64,000 nt of DNA from contig NC_083277.1 in assembly GCF_963506605.1 (NCBI RefSeq), forward strand, positions 4,030,001 through 4,094,000, written 5' to 3'. Below, piece by piece: positions 32,165 to 58,822 of the stretch (positions are counted from its first letter, which is position 1; each line of letters begins with the position of its first letter). A program made the translations under genes and the position numbers. The stretch is from Zootoca vivipara. Lineage: Eukaryota. Below the pieces are notes generated by a model. It had not been told where the DNA came from and did not search any database. It was given only the letters and a program-made list of their open reading frames with translations.

Positions 32165-32328
32165 AAAACTGCAGCTTCTGAGCTCCTCCGGAAGGATGGA
32201 AGAGGCTGATCCTGCAAAGGTAGCGAGGATGGAAGGAGGAAGATGGATGGTAGACCTGGTCAGGCTGTCTCCTGCATTCCTCCCAACGACCTCCAAGCTT
32301 TCCCTCCCAGGACCCTCAGTGAGATCGG
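32165..32328 (+). CDS. G4 N-terminal exon 2a (ATG 32196): MEEADPAKVARMEGGRWMVDLVRLSPAFLPTTSKLSLPGPSVRS
   Basis: cttctacctccctcccag acceptor; G|gtgagt phase-1 donor; in frame with exon 2b and the finger exon. Confidence 0.7.
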
Positions 32329-32603
32329 GTGAGTGGCAGGGAATGGAGAGGGGGACCTGGAGGGATGTTGGTAGTGAGGAAGCTCCTCGGGAAGAAAACG
32401 AGGAAGGGTACAGGGCCAGAGCTCCAGGCTAGCAGAGATAAATGGTAGAAAGAAAGGAAAGGATTTTTTTTATTGGTGGTGCAAAGAAGGTTCTGTTGGG
32501 GACTGTTGCCTCATTTGGGCTTCTTCAGGGGCAGGGGAATATCTAGGGCAGGAGAATCCCTGCAGGTCCTCTGAGGCTCCCTTTGCTTCTTTTCCCGTCC
32601 CAG

Positions 32604-32753
32604 GAAAATGCTTCCTGAGCTCCTCAGCAAGGATAAAAGAAACTGATCCCACAAACCGAGTGAGGATGGAAGGAGGAGGATGGACGGTTGACCTGGTCAG
32701 GCTGTCTCCCGCCACCTCTGAGTGTTCTCTCCCAGGACCTTCAGAGACATCTG
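32604..32753 (+). CDS. G4 exon 2b, tandem copy, 150-nt symmetric phase 1-1 exon
   Basis: tttcccgtcccag acceptor; open frame KCFLSSSARIKETDPTNRVRMEGGGWTVDLVRLSPATSECSLPGPSETS-G|gtgagt. Confidence 0.65.
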
Positions 32754-33401
32754 GTGAGTTCCAGGGAATGGAGATGTGGGACCTGGGGAGATGTTGGGAG
32801 TGAGGAAGCTCCTCTGGCAATAAAACAAGGAAGGGCCGCAAGGTAGAAAGAAAGGAGTCTTTTTAATGGTGTTGTGTCGAGGATTCGTTTTCAGGCATGA
32901 CTCCTTCTTTCTTCTCTGGTGGGCTTCAGGAGGAAGACAGCCCTCTTTTAGCATGGAAACTGTGAGCGGGAGCTCTACACATAAGGAGGCTTCCACAGCC
33001 TAGTTGGTAGCCTCACCTTGGGCAAAAGATTCCTGCATTGTAGGGGGTTGGACTAGATGACCCTCATGGTCCCTTCCAACTCTGTGATTTTATGATTCAT
33101 CCAGGATTGGTTTGACCCATGGGGTGAGAATTTGGGTGCATTTTCACAGCATCTCTCTCCTCCTCCTAGCTTGCTTTCTTTGTAAGAGCTTATATGGGAT
33201 GTTGAATCAGTCCCACCCCCACTAGATGCAGCACATCAAAGGCCCACAATCATCTCAGAATTAATGGGCATTCTGGAAATAATATCATACTGTATTTATT
33301 AGAAACAGGGAGACAGAAAGATGACACCGGGGAGAGTTAGCCATGATTAAAAACCATCCCTTCGCTTTGTTCTCCTTTGGCAAATGGGGGACTGAAAAGA
33401 C

Positions 33402-33537
33402 CAGGCATCCCCAAGCTGCGGCCCTCCAGATGTTTTGGCCTACAGCTCCCATGATCCCTAGCTAACAGGACCAGTGGTCAGGGATGATGGGAATTGTAGT
33501 CCAAAACATCTGGAGGGCCGAAGTTTGGGGATGCCTG
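33402..33537. mobile_element. 136-bp hAT MITE
   Basis: Perfect TSD GAAAAGAC. Confidence 0.9.
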
Positions 33538-33617
33538 GAAAAGACTCCTCAGCAAGGAGCACTGTTGCGTTTTCAGCAACCAGTTGAGAGGGGCTTCCAA
33601 GTCTGGCTGGGATTGTA

Positions 33618-55006: not shown

Positions 55007-55156
55007 AACCTGCAGCTTCTGATCTCCTGGGTAGGTTGACAGAGGCTGGTCCTGCAAACCTAGAGAGGATAGAAGGAGGAAGATGGACGGTTAACCTGGT
55101 CAGGCTGTCTCCCGCCACCTCTGACTGTTCTCTCCCAGGACCCTCAGAGAGATCTG
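55007..55156 (+). other. G6 exon 2a copy (150 nt, open frame, both ATGs lost)
   Basis: LTEAGPANLERIEGGRWTVNLVRLSPATSDCSLPGPSERS-G|gtgagt. Confidence 0.6.
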
Positions 55157-55716
55157 GTGAGTTCCAGGGAATGGTGATGGGGACCTGGGGAGATGTTGGG
55201 GGTGAGGAAACTCCCCTGGCAAGACAACGAGGAAGGCTGCAGGGCAAGAGCTCCGGGTTGGCAGAGATAAAAGGTAGACAGAAAAGGAAATGTTTTTAAT
55301 GGTGATGTGAAGAAGATTCATTTTCAGGCAGGACTCCTTTCTTCTCTGGTGGGGTTCAGGAGGAAGACACCCCACTTTTACCATGGAAACTGTGAGTGGG
55401 AACTCTACTCATAAGGAGGCTTCCACAGCCTCCGTATGATCCATTTTCGGGTCACTGCTATGCCTGCCATGCCCTGAAGGCTGGAAGGAAGACCTGCGCT
55501 CTGCTGCAAGGCCCATTTCCACCTGGCCTAGAGGGTGGAGCCCAGACTCCCCTTCAACAGCCAAAAGAGGCTCCTGGGAGGCCCCTGGGACATTGCTCGA
55601 GCATCTCTTAGGTTGGGGCAAATGGCAAAAATGCTTTATAATGTTTAAAACAGTTCTAGTTTTGGTTCCTCTGCTTTGTTTTCATCGAGTTGGTGTTGGT
55701 TAAATGTTTATTTGGC

Positions 55717-57149
55717 ACAGGTAGGTAGCCGTGTTGGTCTGGCGTAAAAATAAACAAAATCCTTCCAGTAGCACCTTAGAGACCAACTAAGTTTGTCATT
55801 GGTATGAGCTTTCGTGTGCATGCACACTTCTTCTGATACATTGAAACAGAAGTCACCAGTCCCTTATGTATAGTCAGGGGGTGGGGGTATTGGGTGATTG
55901 GCTGATAGGAATGGTAAACCTGTTGATGAATTGGTCCTGCAGGAAAAAGCAAGGGGTGAGGTGCTAAAGAAAGCTTTATCATGTATAATGAGATAAGAAT
56001 CCAGTGTCCTTATTCAGACCAGGTCTCTCCATGGTTTTAAGCTTGGTAATGAGTTGCAATTCAGCAACTTCTCTTTCCAGTCTGTTTCTGACATTTTTCT
56101 GTAATAAGACAGCTACTTTGAGATCTTGTATAGATTGTCCTGGGAGACTGAAGTGTTCTCCTACTGGTTTCTCTGTCTTGTGATTTCTGATGTCAGATTT
56201 ATGTCCATTTATCCTTTGGCGTAGGGTTTGGCCTGTTTGTCCAATATAGAGAGCTGAAGGGCACCGTTGGCATTTGATGGCATACACAATGTTAGAAGAT
56301 GAGCAATTGAATAGTCCTGAGATGGTATGTTTTATGTTGTTGGGGCCAGTAATGGTGTTGTCCGGGTGTATGTGGCAGCAAAGTTGGCATCTGGGTTTAT
56401 TGCAGGCTCTGGTACCAGTGTCCATGTTAAGTCTGGTGGTGGTATTATTGTGGGTGAGGAGTTGTTTAAGATGGGGTGGCTGGCTGTATGCAGTGTTCTG
56501 TTATTTTTTGGGGGGGGTCTGTCTTGCAGCAAGTTCTCTCTGGGTATCAGTCTGGCTCTGTTGATCTGTTGTTTAACTTCATCAGGTGGATATTTTAGTT
56601 CTAAAAAGGTTTGCTGTAGATCTCTTAGGTGAGAGTCTCTGTAGAGTTGGAACAGATGCGGCCGTAACGTAGGGCCTGGCTGTATATGATGGATTGTTTG
56701 GTATGTTTGGGATGGTAGCTAGAAGCATGTAGATATGTTTGTTGGTCAGTTGGTTTTCCGTATAGGGTGGTGCCTATACGCCCATCCTGTATTTTTATAG
56801 TAGTGTCCAAAAAGTGTGTTTCTTGCATAGATTGGTTCATTGTTAGGTTGATGGTGGGGTGAAATTCATTGAATGTCTGGTGGAAGGTGTCCAGGGTCTG
56901 TTGACCATGTGTCCAGTTAATAAAAAATATTGTCAATGTATCGTAGGTACAAGAGAGGTTTGAGTGGGTAGGAGTTTAGGAAACTCCTAAATCTGTTCTA
57001 AATCTGCCATGAAGATGTTGGCATACTGTGGGGCCATGCGGGTGCCCATGGCTGTGCCGCTGATCTGGAGGAACAGGTCATCACCAAATTTGAAGTGGTT
57101 GTGGGTAAGGACAAATTGGCAGAGTTTGGTAGCAAAGTCCGCTGTGATT
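55717..57149 (-). mobile_element. Penelope-like retroelement, 5'-truncated and frameshifted (RT and GIY-YIG endonuclease)
   Basis: NIVYAIKCQRCPSALYIGQTG GIY-YIG; HFLDTTIKI and KPTD RT thumb motifs; 12-bp TSD TGTTTATTTGGC. Confidence 0.92.
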
Positions 57150-58723
57150 TGTTTATTTGGCGTTAGTGGTTAATTTAATTTGGTATAACTGTAAACCGTT
57201 TATTACTGCTGTTATTGTTATTCTAACTGTTATTGTTATTGTTGGTTCCTTTGTTGCCTGTATAGGATATTCTGTTGTTATGTTTGATGTTTTGTTGTGT
57301 TTTCATATATGCTGTTAGCCGCACAGGGTGGCTGTGGGAACCCAACCAGATTGTGGGATATAAATTTTATATATATGTCCCATTTGGGCTTCTGCAGGGG
57401 CAGGAGAATATCTAGGGCAGAGGAAGCCCTGCAGCTTCTCTGAGGCTCCAGCTTGTTTAGGCTTCTGAGCTCCTCCGGAAGGATGAAAGAGGCTGATCCT
57501 CTTTCACCCTCTTTCTGCTAACAACAACACCTTGAAGATCCCGGGTGTAGTGGTGACTTTCTAGTGATCTATGGAAGGGAATCAGGTACTCATAATTATG
57601 TGTGCCTGTAGAGGATGTCTGAGCTTGGTGGCTCCCTTGATATACCTCTGCTGCCTGAATTATGAAAATCCTGGTCTTGGACATAGGTTTCTGGGATGAT
57701 TACTGACTCCATCTCTTTCCACCTTTAAAACACGTTTCAGTCTGGGTTGCAAGAAACAGGGCTGTGTTGCCATTTGTTTCATGCCTGGCTGTAAAACATT
57801 TGGCTCAATAGATCTGGGTAAAAGGGCATCTGTTAATCTTCCTTCCTTCCTGTTAGCCTTTGAAAAGCTGACAAACCTGTTTTCTGACAAGACACTGTTA
57901 ATCTATGCAGGAATTCCTGGGCCCCTCTTTCCTTTCTTTAGATGTAGTTTCTTTGAAGTCCAGGAAGTCTTTTTAGCATCTTAGTGTTAGTTCCAGATTC
58001 TCCCAACAGTATCAGATTCAAGGTGGGAGGAAACCTGGGAGGGGTTTTAGAACTTAGGATGAATTCTATTGGATGATTTGAATTTTTGTAACTTTTGATA
58101 TTGTAATAAAAAGATCTGGCGAAGGGGAAGAGAGTGGCACTTTCCCTCCAAGAGATTTGCTGGTTGAATCTTTGGTCCTTTGTCTTTGTTTTCAATGTGG
58201 TATTCCCACACCCGGGCCCCAGGGAAATTAGACTGGCCTTGACTAGAGCCAGGGCCTTTTCGGCCATTGCCCCAGCCTGGTGGAACGCTCTCCCACAAGA
58301 GACCAGGGCTCTGTGGGATTTGACATGTTACCGCAGGGCCTGCAAGACGGAACTTTTGGGCAGGATGCCGTTCGACTTACTTTCCTTTGTGTAAAACAAG
58401 CCCCAAGGAGGCGGTAAAACAAGCCCAAAGGTGGCCCCCAACCCGCTCACAGGTCCTGTATGATCAGTGGAAACAGTTGGTCCTGGCAAGTATTAACCAA
58501 TCTCAATTCCAACCTGATAATTGCCACCTGCTTAGATTTTAACTTGTCTAAATTAATTTTAAGATGTATTTTAATTTAGTGATGTCTGTTTTTATGCATC
58601 TTGTATTTTCTTAATGATGTTAGCCACTCTGGGTCTGGCCTTGGCCGGAGAGGGCGGGCTACAAAAGTTGTTGTTGTTGTTCTTATTGTTATTATTATTA
58701 TTCTCATTATTATTCTCCTGCAG

Positions 58724-58822
58724 GGCTAGCGAGGATGGAAGGGGGAAGATGGACGGTTGACCTGGTCAGGCTGTCTCCCACAACCTTCGAATGTTCCCTC
58801 CCAGGATCCTCAGTGGGATCTG
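58724..58822 (+). CDS. G6 exon 2b (ATG 58735): MEGGRWTVDLVRLSPTTFECSLPGSSVGS
   Basis: ttattctcctgcag acceptor, 99-nt symmetric exon, G|gtgagt donor in frame with 61033/61036. Confidence 0.68.

Follow-up and report, generated by a model that had tools for sequence, protein, structure and literature searches.

What defines a family of poly-zinc-finger (poly-ZNF) genes is the partner domain at the N-terminus (KRAB, SCAN, BTB, FiNZ), and the gain and loss of such domains are, to our knowledge, poorly understood. KRAB-ZNF genes are laid out as a leader exon, one or more KRAB exons (KRAB-A, with or without KRAB-B) and a finger exon. In cyprinid fish, FiNZ-ZNF genes begin with a short, lineage-specific, Glu-rich sequence of 28 residues that has no similarity to known domains, is highly conserved across ~700 zebrafish genes and is tied by knock-down evidence to the repression of transposable elements (TEs) (Wells et al. 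2023, PMC10547256). For squamates, a passage of PMC3971581 that cites Emerson and Thomas 2011 mentions a SCAN expansion in lizards. Here we analyse a window of 64,000 nucleotides (nt) from the lizard Zootoca vivipara (NC_083277.1, 4,030,001-4,094,000; GCF_963506605.1), to which all coordinates below refer. It is a C2H2-ZNF cluster with six finger-array open reading frames (ORFs; Pfam) and fragments of long interspersed nuclear elements (LINEs), and a short exon, hereafter the module, recurs in it seven times. Our preferred reading, to which we assign a probability of roughly 55%, is that the module is a young leader/linker exon of lacertid lizards whose main role would be to provide a start codon and the right reading phase to finger genes without KRAB or SCAN.

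A search for the 44-nt core of the module (ATGGAAGG...CTGTCTCC) returned seven occurrences at ≤3 mismatches, against an expectation of 0 from shuffled sequence, and these coincide exactly with the seven copies (c1 to c7) proposed in a first-pass annotation of this DNA. What that annotation had said of their structure also holds. All seven have a pyrimidine-rich tract and AG acceptor, a frame that is open throughout the exon, and a phase-1 G|GTGAGT donor; the copies share the strand of their finger exons; and one 12-nt block, present in c1 and c5, is the only indel in the shared coding part. The Podarcis and Lacerta proteins described below are of the long form that includes this block. Across the seven peptides, 18 alignment positions are invariant (R..EGG.W.V.LVRL...P.T..SLPG.S..S).

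The copies fall into two classes. Those with a phase-2 acceptor, c1, c3 and c5 (164, 152 and 164 nt), look from their sequence like start exons. Copy c1 (32165-32328, +; donor G|GTGAGT) is the start-type exon of gene G4, and c5 (51122-51285, −), a long form with the extra 12 nt, is that of G5. Both contain two in-frame ATGs in the context AGGATGG, the first opening MEEADPA (32196 in c1, 51254 in c5) and the second MEGGRW (32229 and 51221). In c3 (38760-38911, +), which lies in a finger-less duplicate of the 5′ half of G6, the first ATG is lost (TTG). The other four copies are symmetric phase 1-1 exons of 150, 99, 150 and 99 nt and can be stacked in frame. Copy c2 (32604-32753, +) is an internal exon of G4 and a tandem duplicate lying ~437 nt downstream of c1. 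Copy c6 (55007-55156, +) is the first module exon of G6 and looks relaxed, because its ATG is lost (ATA) and an Asp has become Asn. The 99-nt mini-exons c4 (40302-40400, +) and c7 (58724-58822, +) correspond to the 3′ two-thirds of the module; c4 has its acceptor behind an (ATT)n tail, and c7, which adjoins the finger exon of G6, carries a MEGGRW ATG at 58735.

The finger exons to which the module would be spliced lie at 34056-35365 (+; G4, 12 canonical C2H2 fingers), 45230-46695 (−; G5, 14 canonical fingers) and 61033-62885 (+; G6, 21 canonical fingers), and their arrays look intact at the sequence level. Each begins with a tandem phase-1 acceptor (34056/34059, 46695/46692 and 61033/61036, respectively), and since these are cag|cag acceptors, each gene could give two isoforms, with and without one Ala. 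No finger exon lies downstream of c3 and c4. The absence of KRAB and SCAN, also noted in the first-pass annotation, was borne out: six-frame pattern scans and tblastn with SCAN- and KRAB-bearing lacertid relatives found no KRAB, SCAN or SCAN-leader relic near G4 to G6. A SCAN-family exon was not found anywhere in the window, and the sole KRAB-A relic found there is frameshifted and lies upstream of another finger gene, G3 (16659-16741, +).

To place the module among known proteins, a profile of the seven copies was searched against 1.84 billion representative proteins. Seven true matches were obtained, six of them named gene models of Podarcis muralis, P. lilfordi and Lacerta agilis and the seventh (P0003) a Logan contig. 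Four more Podarcis models came from two word-index searches, with no match outside Lacertidae; in all, ~12 gene models carry the module, all from Lacertidae (Podarcis, Lacerta). In three window peptides and in proteins P0001, P0002 and P0011, the module matched no Pfam family at E values as high as 10; solved structures (PDB) gave no meaningful match, the best being an unrelated enzyme at E=0.47; and neither a search of the ESM Atlas with the peptide nor a metagenome scan for a 31-nt core produced a match. The earlier claim that the sequence is undescribed and specific to its lineage thus stands. Judged by its sequence, the module is undescribed but modest, a lineage-specific N-terminal ZNF exon that is not KRAB, SCAN or FiNZ.

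Public gene models agree with the exon-to-finger arrangement proposed for the window. In three species, models of three sources (NCBI, Ensembl/UniProt, the P. lilfordi annotation) share the exon boundaries and join the module to finger exons. What follows it at these boundaries is another copy, a KRAB-A relic or the finger exon itself, and in every interpretable model this exon-like unit is linked to a ZNF gene. The L. agilis protein P0002 (XP_032991998.1, 'ZNF34-like') starts at an ATG homologous to that of c1 and c5. It contains two modules joined as ..ERS|GPCS.., with the boundary and frame of c1|c2 (..RS|GKCF..), and the finger exon attached to its second module opens with DGDE.. where those of G5 and G6 have AGDE... 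P. muralis P0001 also has two modules, and the boundary of c2 (S|G.C..L) is the junction between the first and second modules of both proteins. Some models are poor, since P0003 is an unspliced contig and P0005 runs into the tail of an L1 ORF2.

Two further arrangements bear on how the module relates to KRAB and SCAN. In P. lilfordi P0004, the module is followed by a KRAB-A relic (residues 89-115, matching positions 16-42 of 42 of Pfam KRAB at E=0.005) and then by fingers. The relic upstream of G3 in our window resembles this one; it reads TFKEVAVHFTLLDPDQR and then, in a different frame, KVMEENYGTLSSL. In the Podarcis models P0006, P0007 and P0011-14, the module stands behind a SCAN-family leader (..WEAQKQDFLKTMQ..DTEGLLGK). 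Comparison with their intact relatives P0020-22 (PF02023) indicates that the SCAN exon is missing from P0006 and P0011-14, in which the module occupies the slot of a different post-SCAN exon of those relatives (VSWPAEDLANSPKSEQ.. or ELLPVEDVVIKSPKSEQ..). A SCAN-family leader also recurs in two isoforms of Z. vivipara LOC118090069 (P0015, P0016), where ~130 residues (QGSVKMEEQGPRRP...DTEGLLGK) are repeated two to three times with neither SCAN nor fingers. Tandem duplication of 5′ exon blocks seems, from these sequences, to be common in lacertid ZNF genes.

These arrangements suggest how the unit may function. We read it as the N-terminal leader/linker of a C2H2-ZNF subfamily that would have lost its KRAB-A exon, and as one confined to Lacertidae. 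The start-type copies c1 and c5 would supply the start codon, either at the first ATG (MEEADPA) or at the second, in-frame ATG (MEGGRW). The strong phase-1 donor of each copy would fit the phase-1 acceptor of the finger exon, and the symmetric copies c2, c4, c6 and c7 could be stacked between start exon and fingers. Predicted products are c1+c2+fingers for G4, c5+fingers for G5 and (c6)+c7+fingers for G6, the last probably starting at the MEGGRW ATG of c7. The resulting head of 30-54 residues would be mostly disordered, with at most a short beta-hairpin (LARMEG-GR-WTVDLV) and little or no detectable protein-level constraint, and it would mainly serve the structure of the gene (start codon, reading phase, exon definition) instead of acting as a folded effector domain.

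The first-pass annotation had placed the module in the position of KRAB, within a layout of a single short N-terminal exon plus a finger exon like that of KRAB-ZNF and FiNZ-ZNF genes (PMC10547256). The layout itself is as described, and G4 to G6 indeed lack KRAB; the idea of a replacement fares less well, because the P. lilfordi P0004 exon lies upstream of a KRAB-A relic. A module in that position would therefore be a pre-KRAB leader/linker that has outlived the loss of KRAB or SCAN, not a substitute for it. Relative to KRAB-ZNF genes, the module thus sits in the slot of the exon upstream of KRAB-A, as P0004 shows, and the neighbouring G3 keeps a KRAB-A relic, whereas G4 to G6 have no KRAB sequence and the module, which has no Pfam KRAB match, is 5′ of KRAB-A. 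Relative to the SCAN-ZNF genes of squamates, the module follows a SCAN-family leader in Podarcis P0006 and P0011-14, which are near relatives of the SCAN-intact P0020-22, but these module-bearing models lack the SCAN exon and the window contains no SCAN-family exon. The likeness to FiNZ is that of a short lineage-specific N-terminal sequence unrelated to known domains (PMC10547256). The differences are its number (about a dozen models, with 7-9 copies in the window), its composition (Gly/Ser/Pro-rich around a hydrophobic core), its frequent occurrence as a tandem pair and its weak constraint.

The module multiplied together with its surroundings. The duplicated unit exceeds the exon, with ~60 nt upstream and ~150 nt downstream common to all copies. 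At c1/c2 an exon-plus-intron block has been duplicated head to tail with a period of ~437 nt, and c1, c5 and c6 are each preceded by the tail of a further unit, which makes the whole a tandem array of exon-plus-intron blocks. The pairs c3/c4 and c6/c7 represent one segmental duplication (94% and 90% identity). An eighth, decayed unit lies on the minus strand at ~22040-22210 (copy at ~22121-22176); it keeps the acceptor and the PASLPTTSKHSLPGPSE part, while the MEGGRWTVDLVRL core and the donor are deleted. Two 5′ halves without their 3′ parts were also found. The orphan 5′ half of a second G6 module (...LLSSSGRMKEADP) at 57380-57500 (+) ends at GATCC, where an insertion of ~1.2 kb begins, and the corresponding half split from c4, at 39960-40075 (+), is more decayed and retains the upstream flank and first bases. 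The ancestral gene thus had two tandem modules, as G4 still has.

The splitting insertion occupies 57501-58723 and 40076-40301 (+). Its 3′ end (..gccactctgggtctggcc..ggagagggcgggctacaaaa) leads into an (ATT)n-type tail that now forms the pyrimidine tract of the c4 and c7 acceptors, and by its sequence it looks like the 3′ end of a retroposon. The acceptor of these mini-exons (ctcctgcag|) is new and derives from CCTGCAA in the ancestral exon sequence. The sequence shows three ways in which copy number grew: tandem duplication of a ~440-bp exon-plus-intron block, segmental duplication of the 5′ halves of genes, and one (ATT)n-tailed insertion by which a module was split, what remained being a 99-nt mini-exon with a new acceptor. 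Tandem exon duplication and symmetric cassette exons offer a familiar parallel, in that a ~437-nt block is repeated head to tail, copies can be stacked in frame, and two-module proteins occur in L. agilis and P. muralis. In the lacertid case, by contrast, the duplicated exon doubles as a start exon, and one of the duplicates was saved by a new acceptor after an insertion had split it.

Sequence comparison among the copies gave a measure of constraint; overall values are mean pairwise identities, and values for individual regions come from the five full-length copies. Overall identity is 87.8% in the shared exon part, 85.6% in the downstream intron and 87.8% in the upstream intron (88% by region). 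Within the exon, the 48 nt encoding RMEGGRWTVDLVRLSP reach 93%, compared with 82% in the 5′ part and 87% in the 3′ part, and the first 50 intron bases reach 89-90%. The first ~50 nt after the donors (alignment columns 439-489; for example 32329-32378 and 58823-58872) are rich in G-runs (gggaatggagatggggacctggggagatgttggggg), which may serve as intronic splicing enhancers for the short exon. Across the paralogous copies the pooled ratio of non-synonymous to synonymous differences (pN/pS) is 0.61, which is not significantly below 1. Counted changes number 15 non-synonymous and 11 synonymous (omega ~0.5, p=0.075), and in the core five of each (omega ~0.38, p=0.11). Between c3 and c6 all differences are non-synonymous, and in c6 the Met is missing and the Asp replaced. 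The 5′ third of the exon (its first ~25 nt) is read in three frames among paralogues (NLQLLSSS, PAASDLL and TCSGFCAP). An AlphaFold2 model built on a seven-sequence alignment had a predicted local distance difference test (pLDDT) score of 62.9, and its only structured element was a hairpin, L19-G24/W27-V32 of c5, at pLDDT 70-77. As far as sequence can tell, this pattern suits a young exon whose core of ~16 residues is at most mildly constrained. The suggestion in the first-pass annotation that the peptide is an effector or co-repressor-docking motif was not supported, given weak and non-significant constraint (pN/pS 0.61, p=0.075), an intron that is equally conserved, and a 5′ third that is read in three frames.

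Several points nonetheless weigh against the leader/linker reading. Inclusion of the module in mature mRNA rests on public gene models that may be partly ab initio. The 48 nt that encode the core are the best-conserved stretch of the unit, and EGG.W.V.LVRL is invariant in 7/7 copies and nearly so in other species, which would be needless in a pure leader. Copies c4 and c7 are 99% identical (1 difference in 97 aligned positions) against 90-95% in their flanks. Finally, the exon is present in at least two ZNF subfamilies, hinting at retention or recruitment.

One alternative concerns only the ancestry of the module and is compatible with the leader/linker reading. The module could be a diverged duplicate of the canonical squamate ZNF leader exon (..SKMEEQEPAGPEP..LEGG..), neither formed de novo nor left over from SCAN or KRAB-B, and we regard this origin as possible but doubtful. 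It is suggested by the alignment of c1, c3 and c5 to the first 110 residues of a ZSCAN23-like protein of the cordylid Hemicordylus (P0023; z ~3, shuffle p ~0.01 before correction), in which LSSSxRMEEADPA...RMEGG is set against LESESKMEEQEPAGPEPQKSLEGG of the P0023 leader (..SESKMEEQEPAGPEPQKSLEGG..), and by the MEEADP encoded from the ATG of the start exons c1 and c5 onwards. With several targets tried, a p value of this size is marginal, and the lacertid leaders P0020 and P0018 gave no signal (p 0.2-0.97). The module profile, moreover, finds nothing in P0015-P0023, and in proteins of the P0006 type the module occurs together with the canonical leader. On the sequence comparisons at hand, such a descent is a lead and not a result.

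A second alternative assigns a function to the peptide. Its core, MEGGRWTVDLVRLSP, would be a new effector or docking motif, in the form of a short linear motif or a beta-hairpin that recruits a cofactor, and would functionally replace KRAB/SCAN as FiNZ does in cyprinids. We consider this unlikely, although much of what weighs against a pure leader speaks for it. The core is the conservation peak of the unit (93%, against 82% and 87% on its 5′ and 3′ sides in the exon) and has an omega of ~0.38; its residues are invariant across the seven copies and ~12 proteins from three species; and the predicted hairpin falls exactly on it. To this may be added the near-identity of c4 and c7 within less similar flanks, the presence of the module where SCAN or KRAB has been lost, and the precedent of FiNZ, itself a 28-residue, single-exon, lineage-specific ZNF head (PMC10547256). 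Against it, the constraint does not reach significance in the core or overall, and the first 50 intron nt are as conserved as the exon, so that youth, gene conversion or splicing signals could account for the similarity. Copy c6 belongs to the most intact gene, yet its Met is gone and its Asp replaced. The annotated proteins number about a dozen, compared with hundreds for KRAB or FiNZ, and co-occurrence of the module with a KRAB-A relic indicates that it predates KRAB loss. A more specific version holds that an effector or docking module was born within Lacertidae, consisting of a beta-hairpin of ~14 residues (ARMEGG-RWTVDLV) and a disordered Ser/Pro tail, and was retained or recruited in at least two ZNF subfamilies that were losing SCAN or KRAB. 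It would be a reptilian counterpart of FiNZ and a case of very young effector turnover, and we hold it to be quite improbable.

It is also distinctly unlikely, in our judgement, that the module is not a functional exon but simply a tandem ~440-bp repeat, satellite-like or TE-derived, whose splice-like signals are threaded by gene predictors and which is skipped or left in the 5′ untranslated region of transcripts. Flanks that are conserved as well as the 'exon', an array containing decayed and orphan copies (the eighth copy, the finger-less c3/c4 and the two split halves), the variable reading frame of the 5′ part, and chimeric models such as P0005, which continues into an L1 ORF2 tail, and the unspliced contig P0003 would all be expected of such a repeat. 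Against it, the seven full copies have diverged by 12-15% and yet none has lost its acceptor, open frame or consensus donor; in the one copy whose donor is gone, the core is gone as well. The boundaries are identical in the NCBI, Ensembl/UniProt and P. lilfordi annotations across three species. After its split, the module acquired an acceptor again, and the two duplicates of that form are still 99% identical. Lastly, every unit copy in the window lies in the ZNF cluster and matches no other repeat. The copies form tandem blocks without sharp ends.

Descent from known domains was not borne out: a SCAN relic, suggested by FCAPQEAEP in Podarcis modules against FCYQEAEGP of SCAN, does not align above shuffles with the N-terminal parts of P0020-23, SCAN included (p 0.07-0.96), its matching frame has stop codons in c3, and the module is placed after the SCAN slot. 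In keeping with this, the module has no Pfam match to SCAN (PF02023) and its hidden Markov model (HMM) finds nothing in P0015-23. Homology to the post-SCAN exon (WPAEDLANSPKS against WTVDLVRLSPAS) was not significant relative to shuffles, and the HMM again gave no match. For KRAB (PF01352, the A box), hmmscan returned no match on the module at E up to 10, the KRAB match in P0004 being downstream of the module. Descent from KRAB-B is rejected because the module lies 5′ of the KRAB-A relic in P0004, whereas KRAB-B immediately follows KRAB-A on its 3′ side; the module may bear a loose W..DL likeness to the ..EEPW.PDL.. tail. As for FiNZ, the profile search of 1.84 billion proteins at E<1e-10 returned lacertid proteins only and no fish, a comparison made without direct alignment to the FiNZ consensus.

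Other elements of the window were recorded alongside the module. A near-intact LINE at 27045-31947 (+) encodes an ORF1 of 298 residues with a GDSL-esterase match and an ORF2 of 973 residues with endonuclease and reverse transcriptase. It sits inside the module block that precedes c1, and its last ~1 kb is tandemly duplicated (29929-30939 and 30955-31947, 94%); fragments of the same LINE lie at 14551-15258, 44020-44192 and 53905-54651. A dispersed repeat of 150-400 nt occurs at 3151-3309, 16202-16350, 17104-17413, 19845-20239, 33616-34011, 59576-59984 and 60275-60520, in either orientation and a short way before or after the finger exons of G1, G3, G4 and G6. It is CpG-rich in part, codes for a stretch resembling WN.LP..V, and may be the tail of a LINE. 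A short, degenerate C2H2 finger relic with no surrounding gene is found at 25500-25770 (+).

The locus is best described as a cluster caught in mid-change, in which KRAB-A survives only as relics and a young lacertid exon remains at the N-terminus. That exon duplicates in tandem, has survived a TE hit by gaining another acceptor, and counts as coding in the annotations of three species. If its core does bind a cofactor, it would be among the youngest ZNF effector modules known. If it binds none, the cluster would illustrate cleanly how a working start exon can persist in 'ZNF-only' genes whose effector domain has been lost.

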